A stretch of 64,000 nt of DNA from Tetramitus jugosus (Eukaryota > Protista > Heterolobosea). The stretch lies in NCBI GenBank assembly GCA_937625935.1, contig OW569356.1, positions 1 through 64,000 on the forward strand, given 5' to 3'. The notes beneath the pieces are model-generated. The model had not been told where the DNA came from, searched no databases, and was given only the letters and a program-made list of their open reading frames with translations. A program made the position numbers and the translations under genes. Positions 1-26,800 of the stretch are shown here, in pieces. The first letter of the stretch is position 1. Each line of letters opens with the position of its first letter.

Positions 1-778
1 CCAAACCCAAACCCAAACCCAAACCCAAACCCAAACCCAAACCCAAACCCAAACCCAAACCCAAACCCAAACCCAAACCCAAACCCAAACCCAAACCCAA
101 ACCCAAACCCAAACCCAAACCCAAACCCAAACCCAAACCCAAACCCAAACCCAAACCCAAACCCAAACCCAAACCCAAACCCAAACCCAAACCCAAACCC
201 AAACCCAAACCCAAACCCAAACCCAAACCCAAACCCAAACCCAAACCCAAACCCAAACCCAAACCCAAACCCAAACCCAAACCCAAACCCAAACCCAAAC
301 CCAAACCCAAACCCAAACCCAAACCCAAACCCAAACCCAAACCCAAACCCAAACCCAAACCCAAACCCAAACCCAAACCCAAACCCAAACCCAAACCCAA
401 ACCCAAACCCAAACCCAAACCCAAACCCAAACCCAAACCCAAACCCAAACCCAAACCCAAACCCAAACCCAAACCCAAACCCAAACCCAAACCCAAACCC
501 AAACCCAAACCCAAACCCAAACCCAAACCCAAACCCAAACCCAAACCCAAACCCAAACCCAAACCCAAACCCAAACCCAAACCCAAACCCAAACCCAAAC
601 CCAAACCCAAACCCAAACCCAAACCCAAACCCAAACCCAAACCCAAACCCAAACCCAAACCCAAACCCAAACCCAAACCCAAACCCAAACCCAAACCCAA
701 ACCCAAACCCAAACCCAAACCCAAACCCAAACCCAAACCCAAACCCAAACCCAAACCCAAACCCAAACCCAAACCCAA
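1..778. repeat. Telomere, (CCCAAA)n / (TTTGGG)n, ~130 perfect copies
   Basis: Uninterrupted hexamer array from base 1 to 778, with the C-rich strand at the 5' end as expected for a left chromosome end; degenerate junction CCCAACCCACACCCCG. Confidence 0.98.
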
Positions 779-780
779 CC

Positions 781-2251
781 CACACCCCGAGGATCTTCGC
801 ACTTGCCTCATTGTGGTTCTGATTGGTGTGAGACTGTTTGGTTGTGGTTGATCCATTTTCCAGAAATATTTGACCAGTTCTTGTGCATCTGTGTGTTGCT
901 GAAGATCTTGTAGGTTGGCGACATTTTGAGAACAGAAGATTGACATTCGTTCATACGCGTCGATTGATTCATCTGAGTTCCAACCCACATGTCTCTTGAT
1001 TGCCTGTCTTACACTGTCCTTAATGATACCGTATCTCAAGATGCTAGTTAGGAGTGCTTGACAGATATGTCCACTTCGTAATGATCTCATAGTGTATCTG
1101 CATTTCAATTCCTCTGCAGAACTTTTTTTCATCAAGTTTGACATATCTTTGGATGTCATTGGTTGTTCACTAGTCGATTGGGTGAATAAAAATTCGTCTT
1201 GTGCTCCTTCAACTAATCTATAATCACCTGAATTGATCACTTCCTCTAACGTTGGTGAAACAAAAACCTTCCTGATGTGAAAGAGGTACCAAAGAAGAGC
1301 AAACACTGGACATCGATTCAAGTCACTACTGCCGTATACAGTGTTTCTTAACTCATGTCCTCCAACACCTTTGTTCTTATAACCCACATTCTGGGCAACT
1401 AAATACAAATGTTCATCGTTTTTCAAACTTGAAAAGGTGATGTGTCTCAATTTCATATAGGAAAGAGTGTCTCCTCTCCATCCAACATGTCTACCAAACA
1501 TTATGAGAGCTCTCAACTTAATTTGTAGTTCTCTGTTGTCTCTCTTGTGCAATTTTTTCTGCCATTTCTCTAAATCATTGTTGAGCAATGGGCACACTTT
1601 AAATTTCGAGTTCCCGTACTTTCGTATCAAAGCTCGGAAGAGTTTATGTATAAAATCCTTCATCTCTTTCTTCAAGTCGATTCCTCTTTCCTCCTTCAAT
1701 ACAGAACATAGTTGATTCCAGAAGCAGTTGACGACAGTACTATGACTGTATTTGTGTATCACTCGCATATGCAAGAGATATAATCCAACTACAAACTTGT
1801 TTGGGTTGTAAGGGTCAACTGTTGTCAACTCTGAGTGCTTGTTTTCTTGCTCCTTTAGCCAGCTAATCCAACTCCTCCAGGCATAGGCTTGAACCAGTTT
1901 TGTACCAGGAGCTTTAGATAACTCTAATAGATTCATCAATTGAATCATTTGATCCTCAATTGATTGGTTCTCATCGATGTTGACGGTCACTTGACGGCAA
2001 AAATCTTCTCCTCCACCTGTTTTCTCCATTCTCTTGATAGGATTAAACGATAGGTCATCCGTCACCTTCTTTATTCCTGTTTTTCCTGCTAACATTGAAA
2101 GCTCCTTGTCAATGTCTTCCATCGTTGGACCATCAACCTCCTGTGGTTCGAAAGAGTCTTCAACAATGATTAGACCATTAGAAACAAAAGGATGAGAAGG
2201 AGACTTTTTTATTCTTTCTAACTGATTGGAGTACTCTTCTTCTATTGTCAT
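781..2251 (-). CDS. Tyrosine recombinase (Cre/phage-integrase fold), ~490 aa, no stop codon before the telomere; absent from the ORF track
   Basis: Manual translation from ATG 2251 ([10 protein letters not shown]...) is open to 781. Core-binding-like region ([21 protein letters not shown]...VVGLYLLHM...YSHSTV); box [15 protein letters not shown]259[12 protein letters not shown]; K292 (GYKNKGVGG); [10 protein letters not shown]; EFLF; YTMR389SLR392SG; IKRHVGW424NSDESIDAY433ER. The W-to-Y spacing of 9 equals Cre W315/Y324. Confidence 0.92.
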
Positions 2252-2256
2252 TGAGA

Positions 2257-3060
2257 TTAGTTGGTTTTACTCTTTTTTTTGTTGGGACCGCTGGACGAGC
2301 TTCGTCTCTTGGAACCACCAGAGGTAGAGGTGGAAGGAGACGTGGCATTATCGCCTCCATTTTCTCTCATCTTGATAAGGAGTTGTCTAATTCTGGAAGG
2401 CATTCTATCCTGAGACAACAATTCCTTCTTGATGTTATCATCAATTGTAGAAGGACTATGTTGGGACATGACCCAATACGGGAAGGCTTCTAATGCGGTC
2501 ATACTTTCTACCATCAATTTTGGACTTCTTAAAATGGAAGTGGTCTCCAAATTTGAACTTCTCTCATTGAAGACAAGGGTTAAATGGACCAAGAACTCTC
2601 CGACTCGGATCTCTCTTAGGAAACTCTTCAATTCCGATCCGATCGGATCCGCACCCTTAATGGTTCGGAAAAGATTCGCCCCCTCCTCTCCGGTCTCCCT
2701 CTTACGAATCGCATACCTCATGCAGGCAACGATGGACACGTGTTTTCGGAGTCGTTCAAACTCCTGATCACTCATTTTGGCCATCTGACCAACCGTTTCT
2801 TGAGAATGGGGAGGCCTTTCCTCAGTCTCCACAATGACCAGAGATCTCTCCAGCCAATTCAAAGCCTTCTTTGCAGACTCACTTGGTGGAATTTCAATTT
2901 CCAATTCTTCACACAGTTCAGAGAGCTTCTCAATCTCTTGCTTCTTGTTGTTGAGATTCAATAAAGCATCTCTTAGTTGGCTTGTAAGGCTACTATTGGA
3001 AGTCTTCTCTTCCTCCAATTTTTTCTTCAAGTCTTCAATCTCCTTGCTCACCTCCTTCAC
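2257..3060 (-). CDS. ORF1 of the YR element: orphan protein with N-terminal coiled coil and basic C-terminal NLS-like tail; 5' end uncertain
   Basis: 267-aa ORF ends 5 nt before the YR ATG. The frame stays open upstream to 3159 without an ATG; the nearest ATG (3209) is in another frame, implying a frameshift or intron. Confidence 0.65.
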   Translation of the reverse strand: MKEVSKEIEDLKKKLEEEKTSNSSLTSQLRDALLNLNNKKQEIEKLSELCEELEIEIPPSESAKKALNWLERSLVIVETEERPPHSQETVGQMAKMSDQEFERLRKHVSIVACMRYAIRKRETGEEGANLFRTIKGADPIGSELKSFLREIRVGEFLVHLTLVFNERSSNLETTSILRSPKLMVESMTALEAFPYWVMSQHSPSTIDDNIKKELLSQDRMPSRIRQLLIKMRENGGDNATSPSTSTSGGSKRRSSSSGPNKKKSKTN

Positions 3061-3309
3061 TCCTTCTTTATCTTCACCGATGAAGAAGTTGTTACCAACT
3101 TTGGAGATGATAACAAGTGAACTAATTTTATTACCAGTCGTTGGTAACTTCTCTCTATATCATTAGAAACAATAAAAGAAATTGAGTTAGTTTCTGTAGT
3201 TGTAGACATGATGTAGTTGATAACCTTGTGATTTGTTTTGTTTGCGTTTGTTTTTGATCAAAACTCCGAGATTCGAAAGGAAAAACTTTGTTTATTTGTG
3301 CAGCTACTC

Positions 3310-3522
3310 GTTACACGTGCCAAGTTAACTTAGCGCTTGGAACCATCTTCTTCGCGTAGTGGTTGGCTTCGAATCATTGAACGGGGATTTACACCGCATA
3401 AGCTCATTGCATTGCGGGGACTGTCCCTGCTCCCGGATCGGGCCCTCAATTCTACCTCTCGGTAGGTCAGTTCAATCATATTTCACCTTCCACTACTGCA
3501 GACTATGGTCCACCAGTGTAAC
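3310..3522. ncRNA. Putative structured RNA (or folded ssDNA) element of unknown family
   Basis: Nested complementary segments: 3310-3316/3516-3522, 3342-3346/3505-3509, 3356-3362/3490-3496, 3376-3382/3470-3476, plus local hairpins 3320-3340, 3394-3417, 3432-3442, 3452-3465 (GAGA tetraloop on the minus strand). GC-richer than its flanks. Confidence 0.55.
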
Positions 3523-3532
3523 CAGATCTTGC

Positions 3533-3855
3533 GGCCCGTAAACGGGCCTAGGTAGAAATGAAATTTTAGAAGGGCCCGTAAACGTGCCTTAGTAAAAATG
3601 ATTTTTGGGCCGCCCGTGAACGGGCCATAGTAATCAACTGTTTGCCCATAAAAAATCAAGTCTCGGTCGCCCGTGAACGGGCTAGAGAAAAGTTGATAAA
3701 TAGGCGGCCCGTAAACGGGCTAGATAGAATAGGTGGCCCGTTCACGTGTCATAGTAAAAGCATTTTTTAGGTGGCCCGTAAACTCTCTCAATAAAAATCG
3801 ACCTTTATTACGGGCCATAGTAAAAAAGCAGTCATATGCGGCCCGTTTACGGGCC
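3533..3855. repeat. Array of ~9 copies of the 16-bp palindrome GGCCCGT-NN-ACGGGCC, typical period ~38-40 bp
   Basis: Copies start at 3533, 3573, 3611, 3668, 3706, 3735, 3773, 3801 (half-site) and 3840, separated by related AT-rich spacers (ATAGTAAAA...TTTTT.GG). Confidence 0.9.
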
Positions 3856-4040
3856 ACCAGATATGCGAAACCCAACTGAAACCCAACGGAAATCACATGT
3901 TTCGTCTATAGTTCCACAACCACAAGTCAAAAAACAACCATAATGTTAAGTTGAACATTTCAAGATATGAGGAATACAAAAACAGGTATTGTAACGCATG
4001 AATACACTCCTTGACGTACTTTTGGTTAGTGTATACGTTA

Positions 4041-4058
4041 AAACCCAAACCCAAACCC
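4041..4058. repeat. Interstitial telomeric remnant (AAACCC)3
   Basis: AAACCCAAACCCAAACCC in the same orientation as the telomere; further partial copies AAACCCAAC at 3868-3876 and 3879-3887, and AACCCAAAC at 4078-4086. Confidence 0.85.
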
Positions 4059-4800
4059 TGACAACACTCGAGGTTGCAACCCAAACGCTTCTAGATCTCC
4101 CTACTGTCAAAGTTGATCGTGTGGCGGTCCATGGAATCCCAGATGATTATCATCCATCAAACCAGGTTGAAGATGGAACAGTAATTGATCAGCAACAACT
4201 CTGGGGAGAAATCTATCTATTTAGCAACAAGTACATTTCAACCAAAATATCTCTTTCAATGGCTTGCACATGTACAATGAAATACATGTATTGTGCGAAA
4301 AACTCGTTGTTGATTCGTTCTGTTGCCTGCATCGCGATGCACCCACTGTTGTTGATCTGTCACCATTACTCTGAAACAAACAGTATCTAAGAGCCCACAA
4401 GTTGCACGACTTAATCGCGCTTCTGGGAAGAATAGAGCTGTATCATCTGTGACGCAGTTTTCATTTCTATCAGAATGGATTGTGAGTTGAGGATGATGAA
4501 GAAATCGAATTTTGTGGTCCCCAGTGATCCACTATGCCACAACCACTTGGGGTGGTTTTTAGAGTTCATAGTGAGCATATAATATTATTCCTGTCATTTG
4601 ATCGGAAGTGTTCCAATTTCTAAGCAAGCTTATAATAATGCATTGAAGCAGCAGTTTTACTACCTACTCATTTGACGCAAGTAATCACATGATTCATATT
4701 GGATTTTTGTTTCACAGGTTTGAAATCAACAGGTGATGATGATGGTGGTGATGATGATTGGGATGATAAATGGGATGAAGAAGCTCCACGATCCACTGGA

Positions 4801-4900
4801 GTACTGACAACGGTTTATCACACCAACATGTGTTCCAATAGTACACTTTTGATGTACATAGGAGGTAGGCAGATGAAGATGGGTCTCATGACAGCTAGAT
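4801..4900 (-). pseudogene. Small duplicated fragment of the NRPS adenylation-domain gene
   Basis: GTACTGACAACGGTTTATCACACCAA..TGTGTTCCAATAGTACACTTTTG matches 16102-16152 almost exactly; similarity continues after a ~17-nt deletion. Confidence 0.85.
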
Positions 4901-5062
4901 CATACTCTCCCAGCAGTTTCAGTTGTCTGAAACGAGCATTGCACACGACGCACTTTGTATCCACGCAATTGAAGATGAATTCCACCATTTAATTGTGTTT
5001 TGTGGTATGCTGGCAGGGAAATCTTTGTCCTCGTTTCAATGTTTTTATGAAGAATAGCTGTG

Positions 5063-6958
5063 TCACTCACAGCGCTCCAAGGGAGCTGTAAACTGATCAG
5101 TGGGACACATTATCCTCACATACCTCATACAGTCTTCTTCGAGATCAGGATTGATTCCTATGGCTTTGTTGAAGTCTGATATTGCTTTCTTGTATTCTTT
5201 CAAATCAAGGTATGCGCAAGCTCTGTTGTAGTAGGCACTTTCATCGGCAGGATTGATTTCGATTGTCTTGCTGAAGTCTGATATTGCATTCTTATGCTGT
5301 TTGAGCTCACTGTATACATAACCTCTGTTGTAGTAGGCACTTTCATGAGCAGCATTGATGTTAATAGTCTTGGTGAAGTCTGATATTGCTTTCTCGTATT
5401 CTTTCAGCTCATTGTATGCACAACCTCTATCATAGTAGACACCATCATGAGCAGGATTGATTTCGATTGCCTTGGTGAAGTCTGATATTGCTTTCTTATG
5501 CTGTTTGAGCTCATTGTATACATAACCTCTGTTGTAGTAGGCACTTTCATGAGCAGCATTGATGTTAATAGTCTTGCTGAAGTCGTATATTGCTTTCTTG
5601 TATTCTTTCAGCTCATTGTATGCACAACCTCTGTTAAAGTAGGCATTTTCATGAGCAGCATTGATTTTAATAGTCTTGCTGAAGTCTGATATTGCTTTCT
5701 TGTATTCTTTCAAATCAAGATAAGTGCAACCTCTGTTATGGTATGTACTTTCATCATCAGGATTGATTTCGATTGCCTTGGTGAAGTCTGATATTGCTTT
5801 CTTATATTCGTTCAAATCAAGATAAGTGCAACCTCTATCATTGTAGACATTCTCATGAACAGGATTGATTTCTATTGATTTGTTGAAGTCTGATAATGCT
5901 TTCTCGTATTCTTTCAGCTCATTGTATGCCCAACCTCTATCATAGTAGGCACATTCATCGGCAGGATTGATTTCGATTGCTTTGGTGAACTCTAATATTG
6001 CATTCTTGTATTCTTTCAAATCAAGGTATACATAACCCTTTTCGTTGTAGGCTTTTTCATGAACAGGATTGATTTCTATTGATTTGTTGAAGTCTGATAT
6101 TGCCTTCTCATGTTCTTTCAGCTTAAACCATATCTTGCCTCTGTCGTAGTAGAAACCATCATGAGCAGGATTGATTTCGATTGCCTTGGTGAAGTCTGAT
6201 ATTGTTTTCTTGTATTCTTTTCGCGCATCGTATGCACAACCTCTGTTAAAGTATGCACTTTCATGAGCAGCATTGATTTTAATAGTCTTGGTGAAGTCTG
6301 ATATTGCTTTCTTGTATTCTTTCAAATCAAGGTATGCACAACCTCTGTTAAAAAAGACATCTTCATCAGTGGTATCCATTTCTATTGCTTTGGTGAAGTC
6401 AGTAATTGCTTTCTTGTATTCTCTGAGCTCATTGTATACATGACCTCTGCACAAATAAATTAAGCCTCTGTTGTTGTAGACCCATGCAATTTGTCTGTCC
6501 AATAGGAGAATTTGTGAATAGCTATTCAATGATTCAATATAGCTTTTCATGTGAAGCAAAGTTTGTGCTTCAATATCCAAAAGTAGCACCAATATGTTCT
6601 TATCTGACACGATTCCATACGATTTAAGAGCTTTTTGTGATAATTGGCGCAGAAGCTCTTTCAAAATAGGCAAATCATTCGTTTGATCTTGATACGTTCT
6701 TCTGAAGATACCATAATGCAGAAGATAAGTAATGTCAGAATGTTTCTCTGGAAGCAAATTCAAGGCTGATTGAAATTCTTTTATCATTTCCAGTTGTTCC
6801 ATTTGGTTGAAACTGTGCCATAATCTCCAACTCGCTGAATACTCAAAATCCATGTTTGAACAATTGTTGAAACGTTTGAGAGTGTTCCAATAATTCAGAG
6901 TTCTTTCTGTGAAAGAAGACTCCACCCGTGTCACAACACCTACTGAATCATCACTCAT
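5063..6958 (-). CDS. TPR-repeat protein with 13 tandem 34-aa TPRs
   Basis: Repeated AYYNRG.AY..LKEY.KAISDF.K.I.INP units; 102-bp nucleotide periodicity over ~5140-6470. Confidence 0.95.
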   Translation of the reverse strand: MSDDSVGVVTRVESSFTERTLNYWNTLKRFNNCSNMDFEYSASWRLWHSFNQMEQLEMIKEFQSALNLLPEKHSDITYLLHYGIFRRTYQDQTNDLPILKELLRQLSQKALKSYGIVSDKNILVLLLDIEAQTLLHMKSYIESLNSYSQILLLDRQIAWVYNNRGLIYLCRGHVYNELREYKKAITDFTKAIEMDTTDEDVFFNRGCAYLDLKEYKKAISDFTKTIKINAAHESAYFNRGCAYDARKEYKKTISDFTKAIEINPAHDGFYYDRGKIWFKLKEHEKAISDFNKSIEINPVHEKAYNEKGYVYLDLKEYKNAILEFTKAIEINPADECAYYDRGWAYNELKEYEKALSDFNKSIEINPVHENVYNDRGCTYLDLNEYKKAISDFTKAIEINPDDESTYHNRGCTYLDLKEYKKAISDFSKTIKINAAHENAYFNRGCAYNELKEYKKAIYDFSKTININAAHESAYYNRGYVYNELKQHKKAISDFTKAIEINPAHDGVYYDRGCAYNELKEYEKAISDFTKTININAAHESAYYNRGYVYSELKQHKNAISDFSKTIEINPADESAYYNRACAYLDLKEYKKAISDFNKAIGINPDLEEDCMRYVRIMCPTDQFTAPLERCE

Positions 6959-8168: not shown

Positions 8169-10004
8169 TCATTCTTCAAGAGAGCATTCTTCAATATGTA
8201 CCTCACCTATACTATCATCTGTCACGATTGTCTCCGCTATCCCAAATCTACTGTCTTCAATATCAAAAACAAAAACAGTGAGATGCAACTTCAAATCAGA
8301 TCTGGATTGCAAGATCAAATGATGATTCGCATAATTCTTCTGCTTCATCTGTGCCAAAGCTTGATTCTTGAACGCTGACAGACCTTTCTTTAATTTGTCC
8401 TGCACAAATTTGTACTCGATAATATGCATTGATCGCTTCAATTTGATGAAAAGATCCAGAGTTCCGTCCAGCGTGGATCCTTCTGCCAAAAAAGTAAGCT
8501 GAGGGAAATGGCGTTTCAAATGAAGCATTGATACGTACAATGCTGCTGCATACACAGCTTCAATCTTGCCAACATTCTTCTCTCCTTGTATTGTCCGGAA
8601 CTTTGGGTGAGGAAAGGACTTGATCAATCTTCCGAGTTGCTCAAATAATTTCTTCATGTTTTCCTCTATCAGTGCTTCTTTCATCTTGATTGTAATATCA
8701 TTGTTATCAACTAACCCCAGTCTTGCTGATAGATCACTAATCAATGTTTCTCGAACAGAATTGTTGGGTACTGTTAGTTTGTTGTCTTTGATCGTCAAGT
8801 ATCCTGTCTCATAAAACAACTTTTGCATTGTTCGTGTTGAGGGTTTGATCAACTCACTCAAGTCGACAGGCTGAGTAAATTTGTTCACCACTCCTTGCGG
8901 TTCAATGATTTCAACAATGGAGTGAACCGTTGGATCAAATAATGTCCATAGGTGCATGCTTCTACCTCTTGCTGCCCAGTAATTTTCGAATTGGTGTTTC
9001 TTCAGAAGTTGATTCAGATCCCAAGGATTCAGAAGCCCTTCTGTTGCATCAGTGCAGAAATTGTAGCCATAATATTCATTGATAATTCTCTCATCCAAGT
9101 TGGCACCATACTTTCGCTCAAGTTCCTCATATGCATTCGGGTATGTATTTCTTACTTCGTCTAATGTATATCCTGTCAGAGCGTGCAAGGATGTATCAGT
9201 TGACATATCGTCAAGATCATTCATCGATGAAAATAGATTGGTATATGAAAACTTGGTCACACCAGTCATAAATAACAAGTGAATCATTGATCCAAGAGCC
9301 TTGAGTGGAGAGAAGAAAGCTCTGAGCACGTCTCTATTCTTCTTTGCAAGTGAAATATTGGCCTGATCTGTCAGATTTTCAGCAATTGCTTTCGTAATTG
9401 GACCGTCATATTCATCAATCAAAATGATTACTTGTCCAGATGGTGAGTGTCTAGCAATGTACAGTATTGTTTCGTGCAACATTCCCTCAACATCATTTCT
9501 GTTTGAAAATGCTGCCTCAATATATGCAGGTATAACCAACTTGTTCTCATAAAAGCTGTGCTTGAGAACACGTATAATACCAGAGACAGGGTCGAAAGTT
9601 GAGCAAAAAGAGAAATCCAAATGTAGTACAGGCATGTCTTTCAACTTTGTGAACAAATCCTCAGAGTTGTAAATCTCAAATTGTTGTTCATTGTTCTCCA
9701 ATGGTCCAAATGCTTCTCTTTTTCCCAAGGCAATAAGTTTCATTTGTTCAACTGTCAAAGATTTTCCCATCTTTCTTGGTCTTGTAAACAAAATCTTCTT
9801 ACCAAATTCTAGTCTCATAATTCTTTCAATCATCTTGGTTTTGTCAACAAACTTGGCACCACGCTCTCGCTCACGAAAAAAGTTTTGGGTTGTTGGAATG
9901 ACCTCGAGAGATTGATTGCGTTGTTGGGTCTTGAGATTGAAAGAACTGCGGTTCATGAAGAGACGATTCGTCCTTGAACAAAAGACACGCGAGGAACACA
10001 GCAT
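8169..10004 (-). CDS. AAA-ATPase-like domain (PF09820 type) plus C-terminal PD-(D/E)XK nuclease (PF08011 type), with a mitochondrial-like presequence
   Basis: FVDKT, RPRKMGKSL (Walker A), ILIDEYD.PI (Walker B), TGVTKFS, YYGYNF, NPW, NYW, LFYETGYLTI, VPNNSVR; nuclease motif E...GTLDL...IIEYK...ALAQM...Y. Confidence 0.9.
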   Translation of the reverse strand: MLCSSRVFCSRTNRLFMNRSSFNLKTQQRNQSLEVIPTTQNFFRERERGAKFVDKTKMIERIMRLEFGKKILFTRPRKMGKSLTVEQMKLIALGKREAFGPLENNEQQFEIYNSEDLFTKLKDMPVLHLDFSFCSTFDPVSGIIRVLKHSFYENKLVIPAYIEAAFSNRNDVEGMLHETILYIARHSPSGQVIILIDEYDGPITKAIAENLTDQANISLAKKNRDVLRAFFSPLKALGSMIHLLFMTGVTKFSYTNLFSSMNDLDDMSTDTSLHALTGYTLDEVRNTYPNAYEELERKYGANLDERIINEYYGYNFCTDATEGLLNPWDLNQLLKKHQFENYWAARGRSMHLWTLFDPTVHSIVEIIEPQGVVNKFTQPVDLSELIKPSTRTMQKLFYETGYLTIKDNKLTVPNNSVRETLISDLSARLGLVDNNDITIKMKEALIEENMKKLFEQLGRLIKSFPHPKFRTIQGEKNVGKIEAVYAAALYVSMLHLKRHFPQLTFLAEGSTLDGTLDLFIKLKRSMHIIEYKFVQDKLKKGLSAFKNQALAQMKQKNYANHHLILQSRSDLKLHLTVFVFDIEDSRFGIAETIVTDDSIGEVHIEECSLEE

Positions 10005-12642: not shown

Positions 12643-12877
12643 AGACAAAGGATTGAATACACAATATTATCCACAATCTTCGTGGTCTTAACTTTGTTTT
12701 AAAAACAATGAACAAGAGAATCAATCATATTTCATATCCAAGACAGTTGGATTGTCCACTCCAAATAACGATGACAAAAGATAGCCCGTTATCACAGCAA
12801 GAACCAACAATCTGCAATTGCGGCTTTGCGATCGATATACCTGGATTCAGAAACGATACAGAGTTGCTTCTTTAATA

Positions 12878-13308
12878 TCAGAGCTGGGAGATGTCTTCCT
12901 CAGTTGTCGTCAAATCAAGCTGAGCAAGGACGACACCCCCAGGTAATCCTTTGAACGGTCTACCTCCTTTTGAATCAATGAATGGATCATATTTAACTAG
13001 AGGTCCAAATTTGTAACCGTTCTGTTCGCAAAGGATACGTGTGAAGAGTGTGGAGCACTCCGCGATGGCCTTTTGGAATCCTGCTTTTTTTCCCAGAACG
13101 ATACTTAATTTCTCTAAAATAACGCCCACGCCATACTTTGATACTTCTGGATCAATTGCAGTGAAAGATTGATACATAACAATGCCAGGCTGTTCGATCC
13201 GCTGATAACCCTCCATCGCCTTGTCCAACACTTCAAACACTGGAGCGTGTCTTTCAATCCAAGTAGGATCAATTGGATTCCCTGGAGAAGCTAACTTGTT
13301 CATGTTGT
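12878..13308 (-). CDS. 3' part of the Ebony-like NRPS (C-terminal half of the AANAT/GNAT-fold domain), separated by the insertion
   Basis: TAIDPEVSKYGVGVIL...GKKAGFQKAIAECSTLFTRILCEQNGY matches the AANAT-like GNAT C-half; joins in frame to 14541 when the insertion is removed. Confidence 0.8.
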
Positions 13309-14539
13309 CACGGGACGGTTTTTTGGTTTTAAAACCGAAAAATAGGTCGACGAATTCCCGTCAAACTCCATTTCCCAAGCCTATGAGGCGAGCTGGACCA
13401 AGGCGAACCCAGATTATAGCAATAACAGTACATTAAAGTCCTATATAAGCAGCTGGAACTGGTATTGTCAAGCCTATAGCTCTTTTCCTACATTTTCAAA
13501 AACCACAATGTCACAAATTTGTTGTGTGAAAAATGGCGACGGAGTAAACAGCAAGCCAGCAAAGCGAGAGCGAGAGATGACATTTCGAATGATAAGTTTA
13601 ATGATGCTAGGTTGTGGCTTGTCTATGTTGTACTGCCATCTATGGTCTCTTGCATAGTAAGCTTTGCTTCTTCCTTCAGATCAAATCGCCTAACACCTTG
13701 CAACATATAGTGAACCTGGATCACTGATATTCCCTTACTTATTGTACAGGAATAAATTCGCACTGATCTGATATTCTTCTAGTCACTTGACAGTCGACGA
13801 GTACAGGAACAACTGGTGCCGTTTTGCCCTTTAGCATGCTAGCAACAGCTCTCTTTTCCTCAGCAGATCCAATCACATACTGATCAATTTCCTTTCCATC
13901 GCGGTCTCTTGTCTCATATTTCATTTGAACGTACATTGACTTGTCCTTCTGGTTATACATCAGGATGACTGGATATGTCAAACAGCATTTCATACCAGTT
14001 CTCGCAATAGATCTTGTTGCTTCATCTCCAAATACATCCTTAAACTTCTTCAGAGACATGATGGCACGGATAGAGTTCTGAACAATGTTTCTAGGGTTCT
14101 GTTTTCCAAACGAATACTCCAATGTACCTCCTACAAATGTATTGTACTCGGATCGTTCCAGACAATTAACAGTGCTAAACCGTTTGAACTCTCTGATTGG
14201 CTTCTTTGCAGTCATACGCTTTCTAATTGACTGCAACACAGTATTCTGAATCATTTCCCTCCTCGATTTGCTCAGTCTTCCTTCACGGGCATCATCATTG
14301 CTGTCTGCACGCCTCCTCCCTCCTTCAGATACTGGACCACTTCTGTATTCACGTCTTCTGAAATCTACTGTCAACTCATAGTCAGCCAAATAAGCTGGTG
14401 CTTGTCTCACACGTGATGGCATGCTTGTTTGTTGTTAAATGTTGACTAACGGTAACGCCGTTGGCCATTCATTGTCATCTCTTTTTTTGTGTTACAATGC
14501 ACAGGATTGTCGGTTTTGAACCCAAAAAACCTTGCCGTG
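13309..14539. mobile_element. Non-autonomous DNA transposon with ~30-bp imperfect TIRs (5'-CACGG...CCGTG-3')
   Basis: Left end CACGGGACGGTTTTTTGGTTTTAAAACCGA vs reverse-complemented right end CACGGCAAGGTTTTTTGGGTTCAAAACCGA (26/30). Removal of 13309-14540 restores the NRPS frame. Confidence 0.85.
13739..14422 (-). CDS. Basic 227-aa orphan protein carried inside the TIR element
   Basis: Intact ATG-to-TAA ORF; no DDE transposase motif recognised. Confidence 0.6.
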   Translation of the reverse strand: MPSRVRQAPAYLADYELTVDFRRREYRSGPVSEGGRRRADSNDDAREGRLSKSRREMIQNTVLQSIRKRMTAKKPIREFKRFSTVNCLERSEYNTFVGGTLEYSFGKQNPRNIVQNSIRAIMSLKKFKDVFGDEATRSIARTGMKCCLTYPVILMYNQKDKSMYVQMKYETRDRDGKEIDQYVIGSAEEKRAVASMLKGKTAPVVPVLVDCQVTRRISDQCEFIPVQ

Positions 14540-14540
14540 T

Positions 14541-16623
14541 AATTATCAATCGCAAGAGAACAACCTACTACTTTACCATTCAATTTTGCAATTATCGATA
14601 AGTTGTGGTTGGGAACCTCCATGAAGAAAGGAGTGAAGAAATATAGTGTCTCTGCAGCTGATAGTCTCAAGAAATTTGCAAGTGGTTCCTCAGTTTCATA
14701 AATTGTTGCAGCAAATAGAGAAACTTCATCCATATCATTCTCATCATAATAGTCGAATGAGATACCTGAATGGAGATCAACTACAGGAAATTGATTTGGC
14801 CAAGTGTGTATATCTGAAGGAATATGGAGCCTATCTTGTTGCGGGCTTTCAATACCTGTATGATATGAATCTGCATGATCTCCAGCTTCAGCAAAATGCA
14901 CCACTTTTGTTGCAAGATCTCGAAGAGTAAAAGAGAGAATGAAATCGCGATGAGAAACAATGATGCCCTTATCCTTTTTCAACTTCATCTTAATCAAGGA
15001 GATGTTCAACGAACTTATGCCAAGAGAATCAATTTCGTCATCAGGTCCCACCTGAATACCCAATATTTGATTGATAGTCTCACACAAATCTGACTCAACT
15101 TCATTCGAATAGTCACTATTGACGGTGATGATTGGTTTATCGAGTTGAGATCGATCAATTTTTCCATTGCAATTCAGAGGTAGCTGATCTAGCACCACAT
15201 ACTTACTGGGAATCATGTAATCCATCAATTTATCTTTCAGAAAGAGTGGAATATCCTGTATTTCGAATTGAGTTTGGCTCAGAGTGAGATATGCAACCAA
15301 AAAGCCAAAAGAATCTGATTCCTTCCAAAACTTTGTGACACACTTCGTCACACCAGGGCACTTTTCGATCAAGATTTCAACTTCTTCTAAGTCAACGAGC
15401 ATTCCTCGAATCTTTACTTGGTTATCAATCCTCCCTAGATACACCAAATCACCGTTTTTGAGTCTCTTACCAAAATCACCCATCTTGTACATCCGAGAAA
15501 AGGTCGAACATGTATCATATTGACACTCTACAAATCTTTCAGATGTTAACAACTCATTGTTGAGATATCCTTTTGCCAGTCCAACACCACTAACAACAAT
15601 CTCTCCCTGATCTGCCAGTTGTTGGAATTCGTCAACAAGATAAACTTTCATACCGTTAATTGGTTGACCAATTGGAATCACTCCTCGATGTACATCACTC
15701 ATTGTAACTCTATGAAATGTAAGATCAGAAGATACTTCACTTGACCCATAGACGTTGAGGAGTGTAACACTGGCTGATAAAGATAGATATTTTCTACTTA
15801 CTTCCACTGATAGAGTCTCTCCACTCGATTCCCAATGATTAAGATGAGGTAAAACTCTTGGTAGATCATACATGTTAAAGAGTGTATCTAACACAGAAGG
15901 AACAGTTGCCAGTCGAGTAACCTTTGATTCTGAGAGAGCTTCCACAAGGACATGAATATCAGTTCTCCAGGAATCATTCACTAGGCGCAGAGGAACACCT
16001 TTTAACAATGGTTGAAATATCTCTGCGATAAAATCTGTAAAGCTCACGACTGTCTTGGAGCAACATACATCATTATCATTGTAGGGGTATGAGTCCCACA
16101 TGTACTGACAACGGTTTATCACACCAATGTGTGTTCCAATAGTACACTTTTGCTTGCCGCTGCTACCTGATGTAAATATGAGGTAGGCAGATGATGATGT
16201 ATCTATTGACAGCCCCAGATTCTGCTCTTCACACTCGCTAAACATGTCCCAATGCGAAAGGATTAAGTGTTCTGTCATATTGTCCATAATTGTCCGAGAA
16301 ATAATCAGAGAAGGATTGGAAACCTGGACAATGTTATTGAATCTTTCTGATGAAGTGGAGGGATCGACAGCCAGAAAAACGTGTCCTGTTTTCAGCACTG
16401 CCAACAATGCAGCTACGAAATCTATACTTCGTTCAATCGTCACCACAATGACTGAACTGCCAGGAAAGTGCATAGACTGGATGTAGTGAGCAAGACGATT
16501 TGCCTTGCGATTTAATTGTTCATAGGTAATGGTAGAGAGGTCACAATCCACCAAACATTCGAAATGTGGATGTAAGGATGCTTGTTCTTCGAATAGGCCG
16601 TGCAGAGTGAGGATTTGTTTCAT
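14541..16623 (-). CDS. Ebony-like single-module NRPS: adenylation + thiolation + N-half of AANAT/GNAT domain (5' part)
   Basis: TYEQLNRKANRLA, FTSGSSGKQK, KTVVSFTDFIAEIFQPL, SSGETL, NVYGSSE, PIGQP, YKMGD, GRIDNQVKIRG, NGKIDR; PCP motif LGISSL; then YETEEPL...LSIIAKLNGKVVGCSLAID. Confidence 0.9.
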
Positions 16624-16750
16624 TTGTCTTCTTTGTGTTTGGTCTTGTTGCTGCCCAAGACTACCTTCGTATCTGGAAATTGCAAATTGAGTATCTTCCG
16701 CAAGCCCAAGTTCAGATTTTTAGGGTTCTCCGAGGAGTTTGCATTCCAAT
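16624..16750. promoter_or_regulatory. 127-bp divergent (bidirectional) promoter region between NRPS and b5-YqcI/YcgG genes
   Basis: Head-to-head ATGs at 16623 (-) and 16751 (+). Confidence 0.6.
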
Positions 16751-17965
16751 ATGGAAAAATCAAAACTTCTCCTGAAGAAGGAAAAGGCAGGTCAATTCAA
16801 AGACCTGTGGACCACAACTGTGCGAAGAACAAAAATGATATTCCTTGCCATATGGTCCAGCGTCCTCAAGTTCATCGCAACTTTGTTGGGACAGATTTCA
16901 TTTGGGCAAAAAAATTCATCCATGACCATGGAAGATATCGAGTCAGAATGTAAGAAAGGAAGATTGCTAGTTGTTATTGGAGGAAAGGTTCTCGATCTTA
17001 CCCACTTTAAGTATCACTCTGGTGGTTTCGACACCCTGGAGCAATTTAAAGGCACGGATTGCTCTCTTGTTTTCAACCGGGTTCACAAGATGACACACAA
17101 TATTTCCAAGTTTGTTGTGAGTCAAGTTGTTCCCAAGCCAGAACAACCACAGACAATGAAACAAGAAATAATGGAGGATTCAGATATTCTCAGATCTGAA
17201 ACAAGTACAGAATCTACTCGATGCGTAGTGTACAATGACACCGAGAAACAATTTGGTTCACTTGATTCAACTCACTTTGATACAACCCAACAGCCTGATA
17301 TCATGAGAGAACTCGCATTGTTCACCAAATTTATCCGATCTGACCAATATCCGTGTGTAGCAGGCCGAATAGCGTTTGTAAAGAAATCCTTCTGCTTTGG
17401 TCTCTATTCCAGAATGGGAGATCATCAATCGGCATTTAACGTGTGGACTGATCTTGTTCGGTTCATTCGATATCAGAACGCTCAATGGAGAAATGGCAAC
17501 ATATTTACTACTTTCGTTGCGATATTCCAGGGAACTGAAGTTAATGATGAAGATGAATTTCACGATTTACTCTGGAAACATCTGCAGATCATGCATAATA
17601 TCGATCATGAGAAGAAGAGTACTTGGCCATCTCATATTCCTCAGAACGTACTTGATCCACACTTTTCTTTTGTCATTGCAGGACGTCCATTCTTCCTCGT
17701 AGGTCTACATCCTAATAGTTCCCGGAAAGGAAGAACTTATCATGAGCATGCGATCGTTTTCAACTCCAAGTATCAATTTGATAAACTGAGGGAGTATGGA
17801 ATAATGCAGGATATTTTTGCTATCACAAGAGGAAGAGACCTGAAGTTCAATGGATCGATAAACCCCAATTTGATACCCTTAGATGATTACTCGGCAGCGC
17901 TCCAATACAGTGGAAAGGAACTGACAACCACTTCGAAACTGAACTTTGAAACAAACACGAAATAA
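16751..17965 (+). CDS. Cytochrome b5 domain fused to a YqcI/YcgG-family (GntA/DcsA-like) heme guanidine N-hydroxylase
   Basis: b5: VVIGGKVLDLTHFKYHSGG...GTDCSLVFNRVH. YqcI/YcgG: YPCVAG, FSFVIAGRPFFLVGLHPNSSRKGR, VFNSKYQFDKLR, RGRD...GSINPNL, AALQYSG. Confidence 0.88.
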   Translation: MEKSKLLLKKEKAGQFKDLWTTTVRRTKMIFLAIWSSVLKFIATLLGQISFGQKNSSMTMEDIESECKKGRLLVVIGGKVLDLTHFKYHSGGFDTLEQFKGTDCSLVFNRVHKMTHNISKFVVSQVVPKPEQPQTMKQEIMEDSDILRSETSTESTRCVVYNDTEKQFGSLDSTHFDTTQQPDIMRELALFTKFIRSDQYPCVAGRIAFVKKSFCFGLYSRMGDHQSAFNVWTDLVRFIRYQNAQWRNGNIFTTFVAIFQGTEVNDEDEFHDLLWKHLQIMHNIDHEKKSTWPSHIPQNVLDPHFSFVIAGRPFFLVGLHPNSSRKGRTYHEHAIVFNSKYQFDKLREYGIMQDIFAITRGRDLKFNGSINPNLIPLDDYSAALQYSGKELTTTSKLNFETNTK

Positions 17966-18013: not shown

Positions 18014-19555
18014 TTAGGCATTTATTACATAGGTTTCCTTCTCTTCTTGCTCGACCCTCGCAAGAGCGACCTTTGCTTCTTTTCTGAAATTAATTCGCAT
18101 CAGGTACATAATTTGTAATACCGTCATAATGACCAATCCTGACGCAATTCCCAACCAAATACCGCGCAATTTGAGCTTGTAGCCAAAAGCAAAGAGAAGT
18201 CCAACGGGAATACCAACGATATAGAACGCGATAAGGTTGGCTATCGCTCCAATATATTGCAATCCCATTCCTCTGAGAACACCTCCTAATGTTGTCTGTA
18301 TTCCATCAAATACTTGATACATAGACACGATTGGAAGTACCGCAGCCGTTATTCTGATAACTGTTTTGTCTTTAGTAAATATTTTACCAACATACTCCCT
18401 CAACAAAAAGAGACATAGTCCATTGACCACAGTGTAAGCAATTGCAAAACTTGCGCATATGTAAACAGCTACCTTTGCTCGGTGTGGTTCATTTAGTCCC
18501 AATTTGGTACCAACACGAACACAAGCAGCAATTCCTATTGAGAATGGAAACATAAATGTAACGAGCATGATAGTCATAATGATGGAATGGCTGGCCAAAA
18601 ACTTGTCACCCAAAAAACCAACAAACAACGCTGTAACTTCAAATCCCCAAATCTGTAAGCACTCCTGAAAGGAACCAGGAACAGCCAGTTTAAGAATTTC
18701 GTACATATCACGCAATCTGATTGTTTCTCGTACATCACTCAGTATTGATCTAGTTGGGACACCTTCCTCTCCTGTTTCGTTTTCTTTTTTTCTCCACTCT
18801 AACCGAATAGTATAGCTCGACAAACTGATGCAAATGATTATTTTTGTCAAAGACGTTGCTAACCCGCTTCCAATAAATCCTAACGCTTGGTACTTAATAC
18901 CTCTCACCAAAAGAATATTTAAGATGATATTGATGATATTTGCCAGCAGTCCATTCAGCATGGGAAATATCACTACACTTTGTGACACTAAATACCGATT
19001 CGCTATGGAAGAGATACAAAATGGATAGAGTCCAATAGCATTCCAGCGAACAAACTTACCGGCCAAGTGAGCAATATGTGGATCCTGACCCAGCAGAATC
19101 AGAATTTGTTCACTGAACAGAAGCAACAATAATATAGGAAAGGCAGTCAATAACACAATAATAGATGATCGATAAAGCACTAACTTTTTCAATCGCTCAT
19201 TGCCCGCTCCCTCAGCCTGACTCACTAATGTTTCCATTGCCGATAACAATCCAACTGGAAAATATTGGAGGCAAATTGTGTAGGCATTGCCCAGGGATGC
19301 AGCAGAGAGATAATCACCTCCTAAATGTCCCACAAACCAGACATCCACCATGCCCAAAGTTGACTCACAAATGGATGTTATCACTAGAGGCCAGAACAGA
19401 CAAAATAACTCCCATAGTTCAGACCGACCATACAACCTGAACAAAGTCAAAAGACTTGGCGGTTTTTGTTTTAATCTTTGTTTGTTCGCCGGCAGCAAGG
19501 AAGAACGCTCTTCTATTCCCGCTTCTGATTCTTCGATTATGTGCTTGGTTGTCAT
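18014..19555 (-). CDS. MATE family efflux transporter
   Basis: About 12 TM segments; VDVWFVGHLG..LSAASLG, METLVSQAEGA, RVGTKLG, FDGIQTTLGGVLRGMG, GIWLG. Confidence 0.96.
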   Translation of the reverse strand: MTTKHIIEESEAGIEERSSLLPANKQRLKQKPPSLLTLFRLYGRSELWELFCLFWPLVITSICESTLGMVDVWFVGHLGGDYLSAASLGNAYTICLQYFPVGLLSAMETLVSQAEGAGNERLKKLVLYRSSIIVLLTAFPILLLLLFSEQILILLGQDPHIAHLAGKFVRWNAIGLYPFCISSIANRYLVSQSVVIFPMLNGLLANIINIILNILLVRGIKYQALGFIGSGLATSLTKIIICISLSSYTIRLEWRKKENETGEEGVPTRSILSDVRETIRLRDMYEILKLAVPGSFQECLQIWGFEVTALFVGFLGDKFLASHSIIMTIMLVTFMFPFSIGIAACVRVGTKLGLNEPHRAKVAVYICASFAIAYTVVNGLCLFLLREYVGKIFTKDKTVIRITAAVLPIVSMYQVFDGIQTTLGGVLRGMGLQYIGAIANLIAFYIVGIPVGLLFAFGYKLKLRGIWLGIASGLVIMTVLQIMYLMRINFRKEAKVALARVEQEEKETYVINA

Positions 19556-23899: not shown

Positions 23900-26800
23900 A
23901 TGAGTTATCGAAAGCATATCCAGCACGCAGAGGATTGTGAATATTTTTGTACCTGGTTGTCGTACCATGGATATAGGAACAAAAAGGCTGTGGATGAGAA
24001 TTGGAACGCAAAGGAATTAGAGACGGGCAGAGTTCTCGCTCGAGTTGTCAAAAAATTTGACACGCACAATTTCCATGTCTCTGAAAATTTAGCAAAGGTG
24101 AGTTGACCTATCATAAATTAACTTACATGCAATGCTTATTGATGTCTAACACAATTGAAACGAAAACAGAAAGCCAACTTTGAAGAGTTTTCCAAGTTGT
24201 GTAAGAAACACAAGTTAACTGTTCTGTGGGATCCAAAGAAAGCCTATTATGGTGATAAGGTTGAAATAGATCTGGTATGTAGTTGTTTTGTTCATGTGGT
24301 GTAGGTGGATAGCATGCTGACACATTATGATATAGGTTCTCCAAAATCTCATCGAGTTGTGCCTGTCAACAAAACTAAAAGAAAGCGAGGAAAATTCAGG
24401 TCTTTTGTCGAGAGTGAAGGCAGGAATTGGAAGCGGATTTCGGAAGTTGACTTCTACGGTCAGTACGATATTGGAGTCTGGGGATGAATGGAGTGATATG
24501 ATTGAGCACTTGCAACAATGCCAACAAGGAAGAGCTTTGGATCTGCACATAATTAACAGGGGTATCAAATGTGTGGACGGGAGATTAGATTATTTATTCG
24601 ATGGAACCAAAGGACCATCATCCACTGCTGGAAGGTATTGTTTGGAGCTATGGCAAAGTATCGAAAATATGCCAAGAGGACCACTCATTTGTTACCTCTT
24701 GTTGAAGGCTCAAGTGTATTTAGGTTGTTCAAATAGAAGAGAGGAGTATGATAGTACTTTTTTGACGCTTTTGCAGTGGCTTTGCCACAATCCACGATTG
24801 ATTGCCGAGATTCCATTCACTGATGTCTTTCAGCAGCTTCAAAAGTTAAGAGCGAAGCTGACACCTGAAACAGACTTTATTGTGACAATTATATGCATGA
24901 CGCATGAAACACTAACCACCAACACCAACACGAAAGCCAAAGAGATGTGGTATAATTTTCAATTAGGACGAAGGAGGGTTGACTATCGATTGGTATTCAC
25001 TGAAGTTCCATCTTTTGCAAGGATGCATATTGATATATTTGCTCCAAATATGTTCCCTAAACTGCAAGTCCTTCCTGATCAAGTTCCTGATTTATTTTAT
25101 CAGTTGTCAGCTTTCAGAGAGATTTTATCAGGAGTTAATCTTGAGAACCTTGCAGAGAGACTCGCGACTGACCACATGACAGAAGATAACTTCTCATCAA
25201 GTATTGCTCCCATTTCAGCTCTTTGTGCTCAAAATTATAGTCTAATGGAAAAGTGTGCAAAAAAGATGTTCGAACAGCATTATGCGAAAAAATCGTTTGT
25301 CGAGAGTGTATTTTCAACTTTTTCTGGGTTAGATAGCTCGTTGTGCAGGTCAATAATGGATTGCTATGTTTCTGCATTCAAGGACAACATCCGAAAGATG
25401 AGAGTTGATCAGTTTATGTTTGGATATACATTGTTGCCTGAGAGAAATGTATTGTTGGTGCAAGATTTTATTCAACACACTATTTTGACTTCAAACGAAT
25501 TGAAAGGCGTTGTTGAGAGCTACTTGTGTGTGGATGATTCAATAAGTTCTCCGGACAGAATGAAATCCATTTTGACAACTCTGATCTCAAAAAGCAAAGA
25601 CTACACGGACTCATTTTTGTTCATTCCATTGCATTGCACAGAATATTCCAAGATGTTTGAACCATTCGAGAATATTCTATTAGAGATTAACAACCATTTG
25701 AGGGAATTCTTTAAGCAACATCAAAATGGGTTCAATCAAATGTTTACCAAAATTTGTAGTATCAAGCGAGAAGAGAAAGAGTTTGGGAGATTGTTTTATC
25801 TATTGATCAATAGTTTCTTGGGTGTTTATTTTGAAACACAAATGACTGGAGGATCCTCTCTGCATAATCTCATGAATATCATGGGTATTCTCGAAAAGGT
25901 TCAGAGCAGAAGTTCAGTTCATCTCATCGTGTTCAATTCTGCGCTGATGGCCTGTTCCAAGCACATTAGGAACTTAAGATCTGAACCGTACGTGTATATT
26001 CGAACAGGAAAAGGTATTGCTCCATTCATTTCGACATGGAAGAACACTAAGAGCAACGACAAATCACTGATAGCCCAACAGTACAACAATGCGTTCGAGC
26101 AGTACATAAGGAGTATCTATGCAGAGCTTATTGAAGAGGTAACAATGGATGGTGAGTTACTACAAATTGAGGAGCTATTACAGTTGAGAAAAAATTTACC
26201 ACAAGTAGTAGAGCTCTGCAATGCGATTGGCATTAATTCACGATTCGATGGCCAAGTTAAAGATCTACACAATGAACTACAAGTGGCAGAGCGAACTCAT
26301 AAAGGATTAAGCACCCTACTCAATTGGTTGAGGGAGCATAAGTTTGGAACACTAAGAGAGATTGCTAATTCACCCTTGAAACCAATTGAAAACACAAAAA
26401 CGAGCTTAGGTGACTTAAGAGAAATGATACAAGAGACAGAGCAGAGACTAGCAGCTATTTCTGAAACAAAAGATGATTTACTGTACTTCATTGAGAGAGA
26501 GAGTTTATTGTTCCAAGCAGTTCTGAGGACCAAGTTGTCTAACCGAGAAACAAGTTTGAGAACACTCAATAGTTGTATCAGAGAAACTGTTTCGTTCATA
26601 TCTGCATTGTTTGATAACGATCAAATGACAATCAAAAGTTTGGAGGATGTAAATATTGACAGAGTTATCAGAAACATTAGACAGGCTAAAAGAACATTAG
26701 AGAGCGAGTTGTCTATTATCAAAGAGCGCTTCAGCAAAGGTTCTGTTAAGGTGTTTAACATTGATAAATTTGCTGCAGCTTTGAAGTTAAAAGAGTTGAG

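Follow-up and report, generated by a model that had tools for sequence, protein, structure and literature searches.

The window analysed here is a 64,000-nt stretch of Tetramitus jugosus DNA (contig OW569356.1, positions 1 to 64,000), and its left end is a telomere. Directly inward of this telomere lies an element with two open reading frames (ORFs), which occupies 4058–788 on the minus strand and has a recombinase as its second gene. The 788–4058 segment is probably the remnant of a two-ORF, telomere-embedded, Crypton-like DNA element. We call it Crypton-like because a Cre-like tyrosine recombinase is the sole recognisable enzyme and there is no reverse transcriptase (RT). The features, in order from the chromosome end, are the following.

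1–787, minus strand: terminal telomere, (GGGTTT)n, 131 copies (Tandem Repeats Finder and sequence).
788–2251, minus strand: ORF2, predicted tyrosine recombinase, 488 element-derived codons from the ATG at 2251.
2257–3209, minus strand: ORF1, coiled-coil protein with a conserved C-terminal domain (ORF and homology).
3210–4040, minus strand: 5′ non-coding region of the element (alignment and blastn).
3523–3865, no strand assigned: palindrome array, units of ~38–67 bp (repeat search).
4041–4058, minus strand: interstitial (GGGTTT)3, proximal (5′) edge of the element (sequence).

Tandem Repeats Finder gave a single array at 1–787 (unit CCAAAC, period 6, 131.3 copies, 99% matches). On the minus strand, the (GGGTTT)n G-strand runs 5′ to 3′ off the left window edge, which is the polarity of a chromosome end. 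The TTTGGG unit also terminates the fetched Naegleria gruberi and N. lovaniensis contigs, and it is the candidate N. gruberi telomere (PMC3622300). The tract at 4041–4058 is the sole interstitial telomere tract in the 64-kb window and holds exactly three repeats. The ~1 kb of non-coding flank beyond it (4059–5062) contained no credible ORF, and blastn found no similarity there to other element copies or loci beyond the tract.

The original prediction described a minus-strand frame from the ATG at 2251 that stays open into the telomere, and translation of 1–2251 was indeed free of stops to the window edge. The frame comprises 488 element codons ending in ...MRQVRRSS, followed by G-C and then by (GL)n. 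It looked hidden because it runs off the source sequence; the ORF list drops such frames, and none is listed there, as the prediction had explained. The sense strand of the recombinase gene is the G-strand, and because no frame of the GGGTTT repeat contains a stop, a non-stop ORF2 transcript would be a geometric consequence, with the predicted polarity of telomeric repeat-containing RNA (TERRA).

The Pfam scan of the 490-aa ORF2 product returned no family, and six close homologues likewise gave only noise. Searches of the PDB sequences by phmmer and then with a 6-sequence profile found no match to this product. A word-index protein search found five full-length homologues (710–799 aa) and two fragments, none of them annotated. 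The five showed 60–72% identity with E-values of 1e-196 to 1e-222, far beyond chance. A profile of the conserved core, searched by HMM against a library of 1.84 billion proteins, gave 62 representatives, 46 of them below 1e-10, while the JGI metagenome contigs, searched with the close-homologue alignment, held no relative. The named family members belong to N. lovaniensis, Willaertia magna, and N. gruberi, and the N. gruberi protein carries a C-terminal chromodomain. Their public records bear only the labels ‘hypothetical’ or ‘predicted’, so the family assignment is of use for annotation.

Individual members showed sub-threshold Pfam matches to NDC10_II, Phage_int_SAM_4, and Phage_integrase. 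For Phage_integrase, the best member reached 17.1 bits against a cut-off of 27.1, and the window protein gave no match. Because no significant Phage_integrase match was obtained, membership of ORF2 in the tyrosine recombinase superfamily rests on the modelled fold and the motifs. A 33-sequence profile searched against the PDB sequences gave Cre as the best match (E 0.008), followed by XerA and XerD, and aligned box I onto Cre R173 and the GW...Y motif onto Cre W315/Y324. AlphaFold run with the 6-sequence alignment gave an unusable model (pLDDT 43.5); with 33 diverse relatives, pLDDT rose to 83.2 and pTM was 0.70. Foldseek was then the structure check that had been suggested for an integrase catalytic fold, and the model matched Cre over both domains (E 2.4e-7, probability 1.0, TM 0.68–0.70, ~360 aligned columns). 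All 50 best PDB matches were tyrosine recombinases, and 30 of the top 37 were Cre or Tre, the latter an engineered Cre variant. The remaining matches were XerH, Tn1549 integrase, integron integrase, and XerA. Among the named matches in the viral library, nearly all were integrases.

The ORF2 product has an N-terminal core-binding-like domain and a catalytic domain containing R259, K292, R389, R392, W424, and Y433. These catalytic positions lay where the original prediction had placed them and were invariant in the six close homologues. In the 33-member family alignment, K292 (31/31) and Y433 (26/26) showed no exception. R259 was kept in 30 of 31 members and R392 in 28 of 29. R389 was found in 28 of 31, with His in two, which is the canonical HxxR form. 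W424 was found in 23 of 28, with the usual alternative His in four. Judged from the model and these residues, the ORF2 product is a tyrosine recombinase with a Cre-type fold and catalytic signature. Cleavage through a 3′-phosphotyrosine and strand exchange would be its predicted activity.

The main frame of ORF1 is open from 3159 to 2260, and its stop codon (2259–2257) lies 5 nt from the ORF2 ATG. The lone upstream ATG of ORF1 (3209) is in another frame, which stops at 3057. The similarity to the ORF1 of a complete relative (L001) changes frame near 3120–3135, a switch that reflects a mutational frameshift or else a sequencing error in a homopolymer. Window ORF1 showed 32–42% identity to the ORF1 of L001, L002, and L003, and ~29% to that of L006. 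No protein of the element evolves faster than ORF1 (32–42% identity vs 60–75% for the recombinase core). A Pfam scan found no family in it, and an ORF1 profile found relatives in the close lineage only and none in the distant families.

The palindrome array lies ~315 nt upstream of the ORF1 ATG. Each unit holds a 16-bp inverted repeat, GGCCCGT-NN-ACGGGCC, in both orientations. The pattern GCCCGTNNACGGGC gave six matches, all within 3534–3854, and 0 were expected in 100 shuffles. The inverted repeat differs from one close lineage to the next and is arranged upstream of ORF1 in 38–40-bp tandem units. That of L001 is GGCCCAC-GT-GTGGGCC, and that of L003 is GGAGCTC-AT-GAGCTCC, with half-sites recurring near the L003 3′ end. 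The L002 repeat is GGTGGCACC-ATCG-GGTGCCACC and the L006 repeat is GGCCGTCC-CGGCAA-GGACGGCC. We considered the palindromes as lox-like crossover sites but did not adopt this reading, as both orientations occur in one array and the palindromes are short. A putative protein-binding role is all that can be said of the arrays.

Two relatives are complete copies, L001 (NCBI assembly, 4.1 kb) and L006 (Logan contig, 4.4 kb). Their contigs start with (GGGTTT)3 or its last 17 nt, continue with ORF1 and ORF2, and have a 3′ end, ...ATTTTTCGATTT, that directly joins telomere repeats. The anatomy of a complete copy can thus be read directly: about three telomere repeats, the 5′ end, the inverted-repeat array, ORF1, ORF2, an ...ATTT terminus, and the telomere. 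The genes read toward the chromosome tip. ORF2 of the complete relatives encodes the recombinase followed by a conserved C-terminal domain; a Pfam scan of this C-terminal region of the relatives found no family. The 5′ edge is likewise defined. In L002 the tract has exactly three repeats, in the same phase as in the window, behind an unrelated upstream flank, and the 5′ end that follows it resembles that of the window (TAAC-R-TAT...ACAAACCCAAAG). The first ~25 nt of the window element (4040–4016) are conserved with the 5′ ends of L002 and L006, and less closely with that of L001.

In L001, the last ~30 nt before the true repeats (4120–4152) are degenerate telomere-like units (GAATCGATTT, TTCGATTT). 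The 3′ terminus of the element may, from this sequence, have evolved from telomere repeats. A tRNA-like string resembling GTTCGAATCC at the L001 3′ end was considered and rejected, as ARAGORN found no tRNA. Rfam gave only sub-threshold miRNA noise, in L003.

The best-known eukaryotic elements with a tyrosine recombinase are retrotransposons, and the window copy could in principle be a fragment of a DIRS, Ngaro, or VIPER-type element. We hold this to be extremely unlikely. The complete copies of 4.1–4.4 kb contain ORF1 and ORF2 only, and these gave no match to an RT, RNase H, or DDE family. A repeat search of L001 and L006 found no long terminal repeat (LTR) or terminal inverted repeat (TIR) and no split or inverted terminal repeats; the only direct repeats at their ends are telomeric.

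The window copy is truncated. Uninterrupted full-length ORF2 relatives are 710–760 aa long, and window ORF2 ends 221–290 codons short of them. The region missing after RRSS is conserved in homologues (...HPKKSP.SV.K.VSFR.IK.RILE...WMTYHQ.YIKKWCEN...LLNVGK...KVFYEDY) and also holds a conserved C-terminal Y-D/S-L..LL motif. The 3′ untranslated end of the element is absent as well. The recombinase ORF had been described as intact, which is correct for its core only: the C-terminal codons are gone, and the ATG of the accompanying ORF1 is out of frame. Because ORF2 is truncated and the ORF1 start is out of frame, the window copy is most likely a dead, healed remnant, and the interest lies in the family that it revealed.

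The junction itself supports such healing. DNA homology with the relatives ceases after ...CGA AGA TCC TC, and the innermost ~15 nt of the terminal telomere (about 773–787) are irregular and read GGGGTGTGGGTTGGG. At this position the homologues code S/V/P-K/N/H-H/S/R-P-K. Since homology stops at TCC TC and the homologues code other residues there, GGGGTGTGGGTTGGG is not element-derived but the irregular first stretch of the added telomere. The idea that telomerase healed the break at a G/T-rich seed is therefore not supported. Irregular starts were also seen at other distal junctions of the family: L007 begins with GGGTTGGGGTGGGTTGGGTTT, and L002 and L005 begin with GGGTTGGGTTTGGG.

A misjoin of telomeric reads to an internal recombinase gene is an alternative that we consider no less remote than the retrotransposon fragment. 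It concerns a single junction in a single assembly. However, the junction opens with variant repeats like other natural junctions, and an interstitial tract with the canonical element 5′ end lies 3.3 kb inward, as in independent copies. The same telomere association is present in independent assemblies.

The telomeric address was seen across the wider family. In eight diverged lineages, which span several heterolobosean genomes and environmental contigs, the recombinase gene adjoins the telomere and has the G-strand as its sense strand. The distant members show 23–31% identity to the window recombinase core. The N. gruberi gene has a tract of 4 repeats 400 bp upstream and the terminal telomere on its downstream side. 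The N. lovaniensis gene points toward a terminal telomere at a distance of 5.8 kb. In an AT-rich environmental family (L011–L015), a tract of 2.3 repeats precedes the gene by 2 kb in L011–L013, and a defined end, ...CCCACTAATTT, abuts the telomere in L011, L012, and L015. A second environmental family (L016, L017) ends in ...GTTGAGATTT before the telomere. The defined ...ATTT terminus abutting repeats is therefore shared by the two complete copies and two more distant families. In L011–L013, the sequence just before the short tract likewise ends in ...ATTT, which suggests the 3′ end of a different element and hence head-to-tail arrays.

These data bear on another explanation, in which an ordinary subtelomeric host gene suffered a chance break that was healed and has no special relation to the telomere. 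Truncation with direct repeat addition is indeed the look of a healed break. We disfavour this explanation as very unlikely, because a place beside telomere repeats is shared, in a single polarity, by eight diverged lineages, of which some have defined ends, and because one assembly contains several lineages that are just 60–72% identical to window ORF2. The original prediction had set breakage and healing against the telomere as the natural insertion site. Both parts stood, but not as mutually exclusive alternatives: the usual place of the family is within or beside telomere repeats with the G-strand as sense, and the window copy was in addition terminally deleted and recapped.

Several side observations concern these distant loci. 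In W. magna (L009), a 159-aa opposite-strand gene with a histone fold (2607–3086) follows the recombinase gene. In N. gruberi (L010), there is likewise a 159-aa opposite-strand gene (12826–13305), followed by an H3-like ORF (13495–13794), and these two lineages may carry histone-like cargo. Arrays of variant repeats lie just inside the canonical telomere, with (GGGTTTATT)n at 17600–17726 of the N. lovaniensis locus (L008) and (GGTTTGGGTTTTTA)n at 18830–18939 of the N. gruberi locus. In L008, a pogo-type DDE_1 transposase gene stands between the recombinase gene and the telomere.

For the window copy, the preferred reading proposes the following course. The copy would once have been complete and terminal. 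A terminal deletion would then have removed the distal 0.85–1.2 kb of the element together with the old telomere, and telomerase would have added repeats straight onto the broken end, starting irregularly. The ORF2 frame has no stop because the break was, on this account, capped directly by the new repeats. The element is putatively mobile, and its way of moving is inferred. As a possibility that we put forward tentatively and at somewhat short of even odds, the element may have spread between chromosome ends by recombinase-catalysed exchange, with the palindromes binding an element-encoded dimer. The crossover sequence would be the short telomere tract of the element and the chromosomal telomere, as in the integration of an excised circle. 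The single orientation would arise because the asymmetric telomere repeat serves as the crossover. The dimeric protein that putatively binds the inverted-repeat arrays would be ORF1 or the recombinase, and ORF1 varies along with the lineage palindromes.

A number of observations weigh against this reading. The data contain no empty sites or circle junctions, and the window end is known from the assembly alone. The proximal tracts are fixed and short (2.3–4.3 repeats), whereas integration into long telomeres predicts variable length; the terminal telomeres at these loci reach at least 60 repeats (131 in the window) vs about three in the proximal tracts. A fixed proximal tract agrees with an element-owned tract or with break-induced replication from critically short telomeres, but is hard to square with elements inserting at random into long ones. 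In N. lovaniensis, the copy lacks a 5′ tract. W. magna is an exception in that it has no flanking G-strand tract and shows a short C-strand tract 2 kb downstream. R389 takes the place of the usual first His of the HxxR box, though two members have His. In L002 (6152–6225) and L005 (4505–4625), a telomere-like G tract interrupts ORF2 and is followed after 13–17 nt by its inverted complement (CCAAACCCAACCC), with a second copy ~100 nt further in L005. These interruptions may not be simple healing; a fold-back event, or a small inserted piece whose inverted ends resemble telomere repeats, could account for them.

The fixed tracts bring in a serious rival, which we rate as somewhat unlikely. In this model, the unit ‘(GGGTTT)3-element-telomere’ is copied by break-induced replication or gene conversion, in the manner of the yeast Y′ element, and the recombinase does no targeting. 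Copying would start when a critically short telomere invades an internal tract, and the recombinase would resolve or excise circles, or do nothing related to targeting. The short, fixed-length proximal tracts and the same three repeats behind unrelated flanks agree with this. L011–L013 resemble head-to-tail arrays parted by short tracts, which is the layout of yeast Y′ arrays. On the other side, the recombinase core and its catalytic residues are kept down to 21–31% identity across species, and this speaks for a role that the element cannot do without. Break-induced replication also leaves the sharply defined ...ATTT 3′ termini and the conserved 5′-terminal sequence unexplained.

A more speculative reading, which we regard as improbable, is that the family is a DNA-based chromosome-end element with its own telomere seed, formed by the fixed (GGGTTT)3 and by the ...ATTT end in TTTGGG register. 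The recombinase would join the unit to short or broken ends, and telomerase would extend the terminus of the element itself. The unit would act as a capping or healing module that drives transcription of TERRA polarity into the telomere, and it might persist from one jump to the next as a small episome by means of the palindrome arrays. If true, a telomerase-positive protist lineage would have a tyrosine-recombinase analogue of the Drosophila HeT-A/TART system.

An episome also figures in a separate explanation of similar improbability, in which the element is a small circular plasmid (2-micron-like or EBV-like) with a chromosomal phase through occasional recombinase-mediated integration into telomeres. 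The 38–40-bp palindrome arrays would then be partition or replication sites bound by ORF1. Both ends of the L001 and L006 units consist of the same telomere repeat, as would be expected of a circle or a tandem array. The palindromic sites are lineage-specific with a period of about four helical turns, and the rapid evolution of ORF1 relative to the recombinase core points the same way. However, the copies in the window, in N. gruberi, and in N. lovaniensis plainly lie in chromosomes, and there is no replication protein. Short-read assembly, moreover, yields repeat-bounded contigs at any repeat boundary.

The other genes of the window are eukaryotic, closely packed, and largely uninterrupted. 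Its copper ATPase showed 76% identity to an NCBI protein, and the best named match was Acrasis kona (51%). Together with the telomere unit, this points most likely to a heterolobosean other than Naegleria, and no part of the window has a human appearance. The first gene inward of the element (5063–6958, minus strand) encodes a 631-aa protein made almost wholly of TPR repeats, and its DNA is a tandem array of 102 bp (34 codons) with 12.8 copies at 76% identity. At 8169–10004 (minus strand), a gene for a 611-aa protein combines AAA-ATPase_like (PF09820, E 9e-30) with PDDEXK_9, a domain architecture characteristic of bacteria and archaea. Here it lies 8 kb from a eukaryotic telomere, and it may be a horizontally acquired subtelomeric gene. 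A divergent pair at 14446–17965 encodes an AMP-binding plus PP-binding protein (725 aa) and a cytochrome-b5 plus YqcI/YcgG fusion (408 aa), and this unusual pairing may be a small secondary-metabolism cluster. Pfam scans at E 1e-3 gave no family for two ORFs of 1752 and 2829 aa with a 7-nt overlap (24357–38098, plus strand), nor for the minus-strand proteins of 1757 aa (44421–49694), 799 aa (53468–55867), and 1125 aa (60613–63990).

Compared with known systems, the element is nearest in content to the Cryptons. It shares with them a tyrosine recombinase as the sole enzyme, the absence of RT, TIRs, and LTRs, and short direct-repeat flanks. It differs in having ORF1, its own C-terminal domain, palindrome arrays, a strict telomere location, and a fixed polarity. 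The sequence affiliation would rest on sub-threshold matches to NDC10_II (P0017, 23.9 bits against a cut-off of 26.3; P0013, 16.3 bits). NDC10_II is a domain of Ndc10/Cbf2, which derives from CryptonF (Kojima & Jurka 2011, PMC3212892). The Crypton-linked domains GCR1_C and DUF3504 gave no match in Pfam scans of family members. Heterolobosea are not among the Crypton hosts of PMC3212892, in which the word ‘Naegleria’ occurs 0 times.

Compared with Cre, XerC-XerD, and XerH, the recombinase has the same two-domain fold and the R-K-(H/R)-R-(W/H)-Y set, and its W-to-Y spacing is nine residues, as in Cre. Identity to these proteins is only 12–14%, ORF2 has roughly double their length and additional regions at both termini, and the first His of the HxxR box is Arg in most family members. 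A protelomerase of the TelK/ResT type is not indicated: the chromosome end is a canonical repeat telomere, no protelomerase was among the 50 best PDB matches, and nothing ties the element palindromes to chromosome ends.

Yeast Y′, Drosophila HeT-A/TART, Bombyx TRAS/SART, and bdelloid Athena use a helicase or a reverse transcriptase. They resemble the element in their head-to-tail units, short telomere tracts, distal truncation, and recapping. In the present element, by contrast, a tyrosine recombinase takes that role, and the 5′ end lies proximally, whereas retroelements that prime from a chromosome 3′ end have the opposite orientation. A telomere-specific non-LTR or Penelope-like retroelement does not agree with the element, which has no RT, a proximal 5′ end, and the G-strand as sense. 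For Y′, the layout is similar, but Pfam scans found no helicase. The 2-micron plasmid (with FLP) and EBV (with FR/EBNA1) are small units with arrays for episome maintenance. The element shares with them its small size, a tyrosine recombinase, and tandem arrays of palindromic protein-binding sites; it differs in showing no sign of an episomal state, no replication or partition proteins, and no inverted repeats for FLP-type flipping.

In the literature searched on Naegleria and other Heterolobosea we found no description of such an element (Repbase was outside the scope), and a telomere-embedded heterolobosean recombinase element is apparently undescribed. Known telomere-specific mobile elements are almost all retroelements, and the literature searched held one tyrosine-recombinase case, that of crustacean endogenous viruses. 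These endogenous nimaviruses encode telomere-repeat-specific tyrosine recombinases (PMC10871703). Like the present family, they are recombinase-bearing elements with the host telomere motif on either flank, and they are possibly episomal or concatemeric (PMC10871703). They differ in being viral genomes of up to 300–360 kb in animals, compared with a 4-kb two-gene protist element, and their recombinase family is unrelated and carries C2H2 and arm-binding domains (PMC10871703). The present family, in contrast, is a compact two-gene, recombinase-only element with a telomeric address and polarity kept across Heterolobosea, including the genus of Naegleria fowleri. It offers a system for asking how a tyrosine recombinase reads a 6-bp repeat, how chromosome ends are lost and recapped, and whether element promoters feed TERRA-like transcription. 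Set beside the retroelements and the nimaviruses, a telomeric recombinase-only element would add to the strategies by which selfish DNA is known to exploit chromosome ends.

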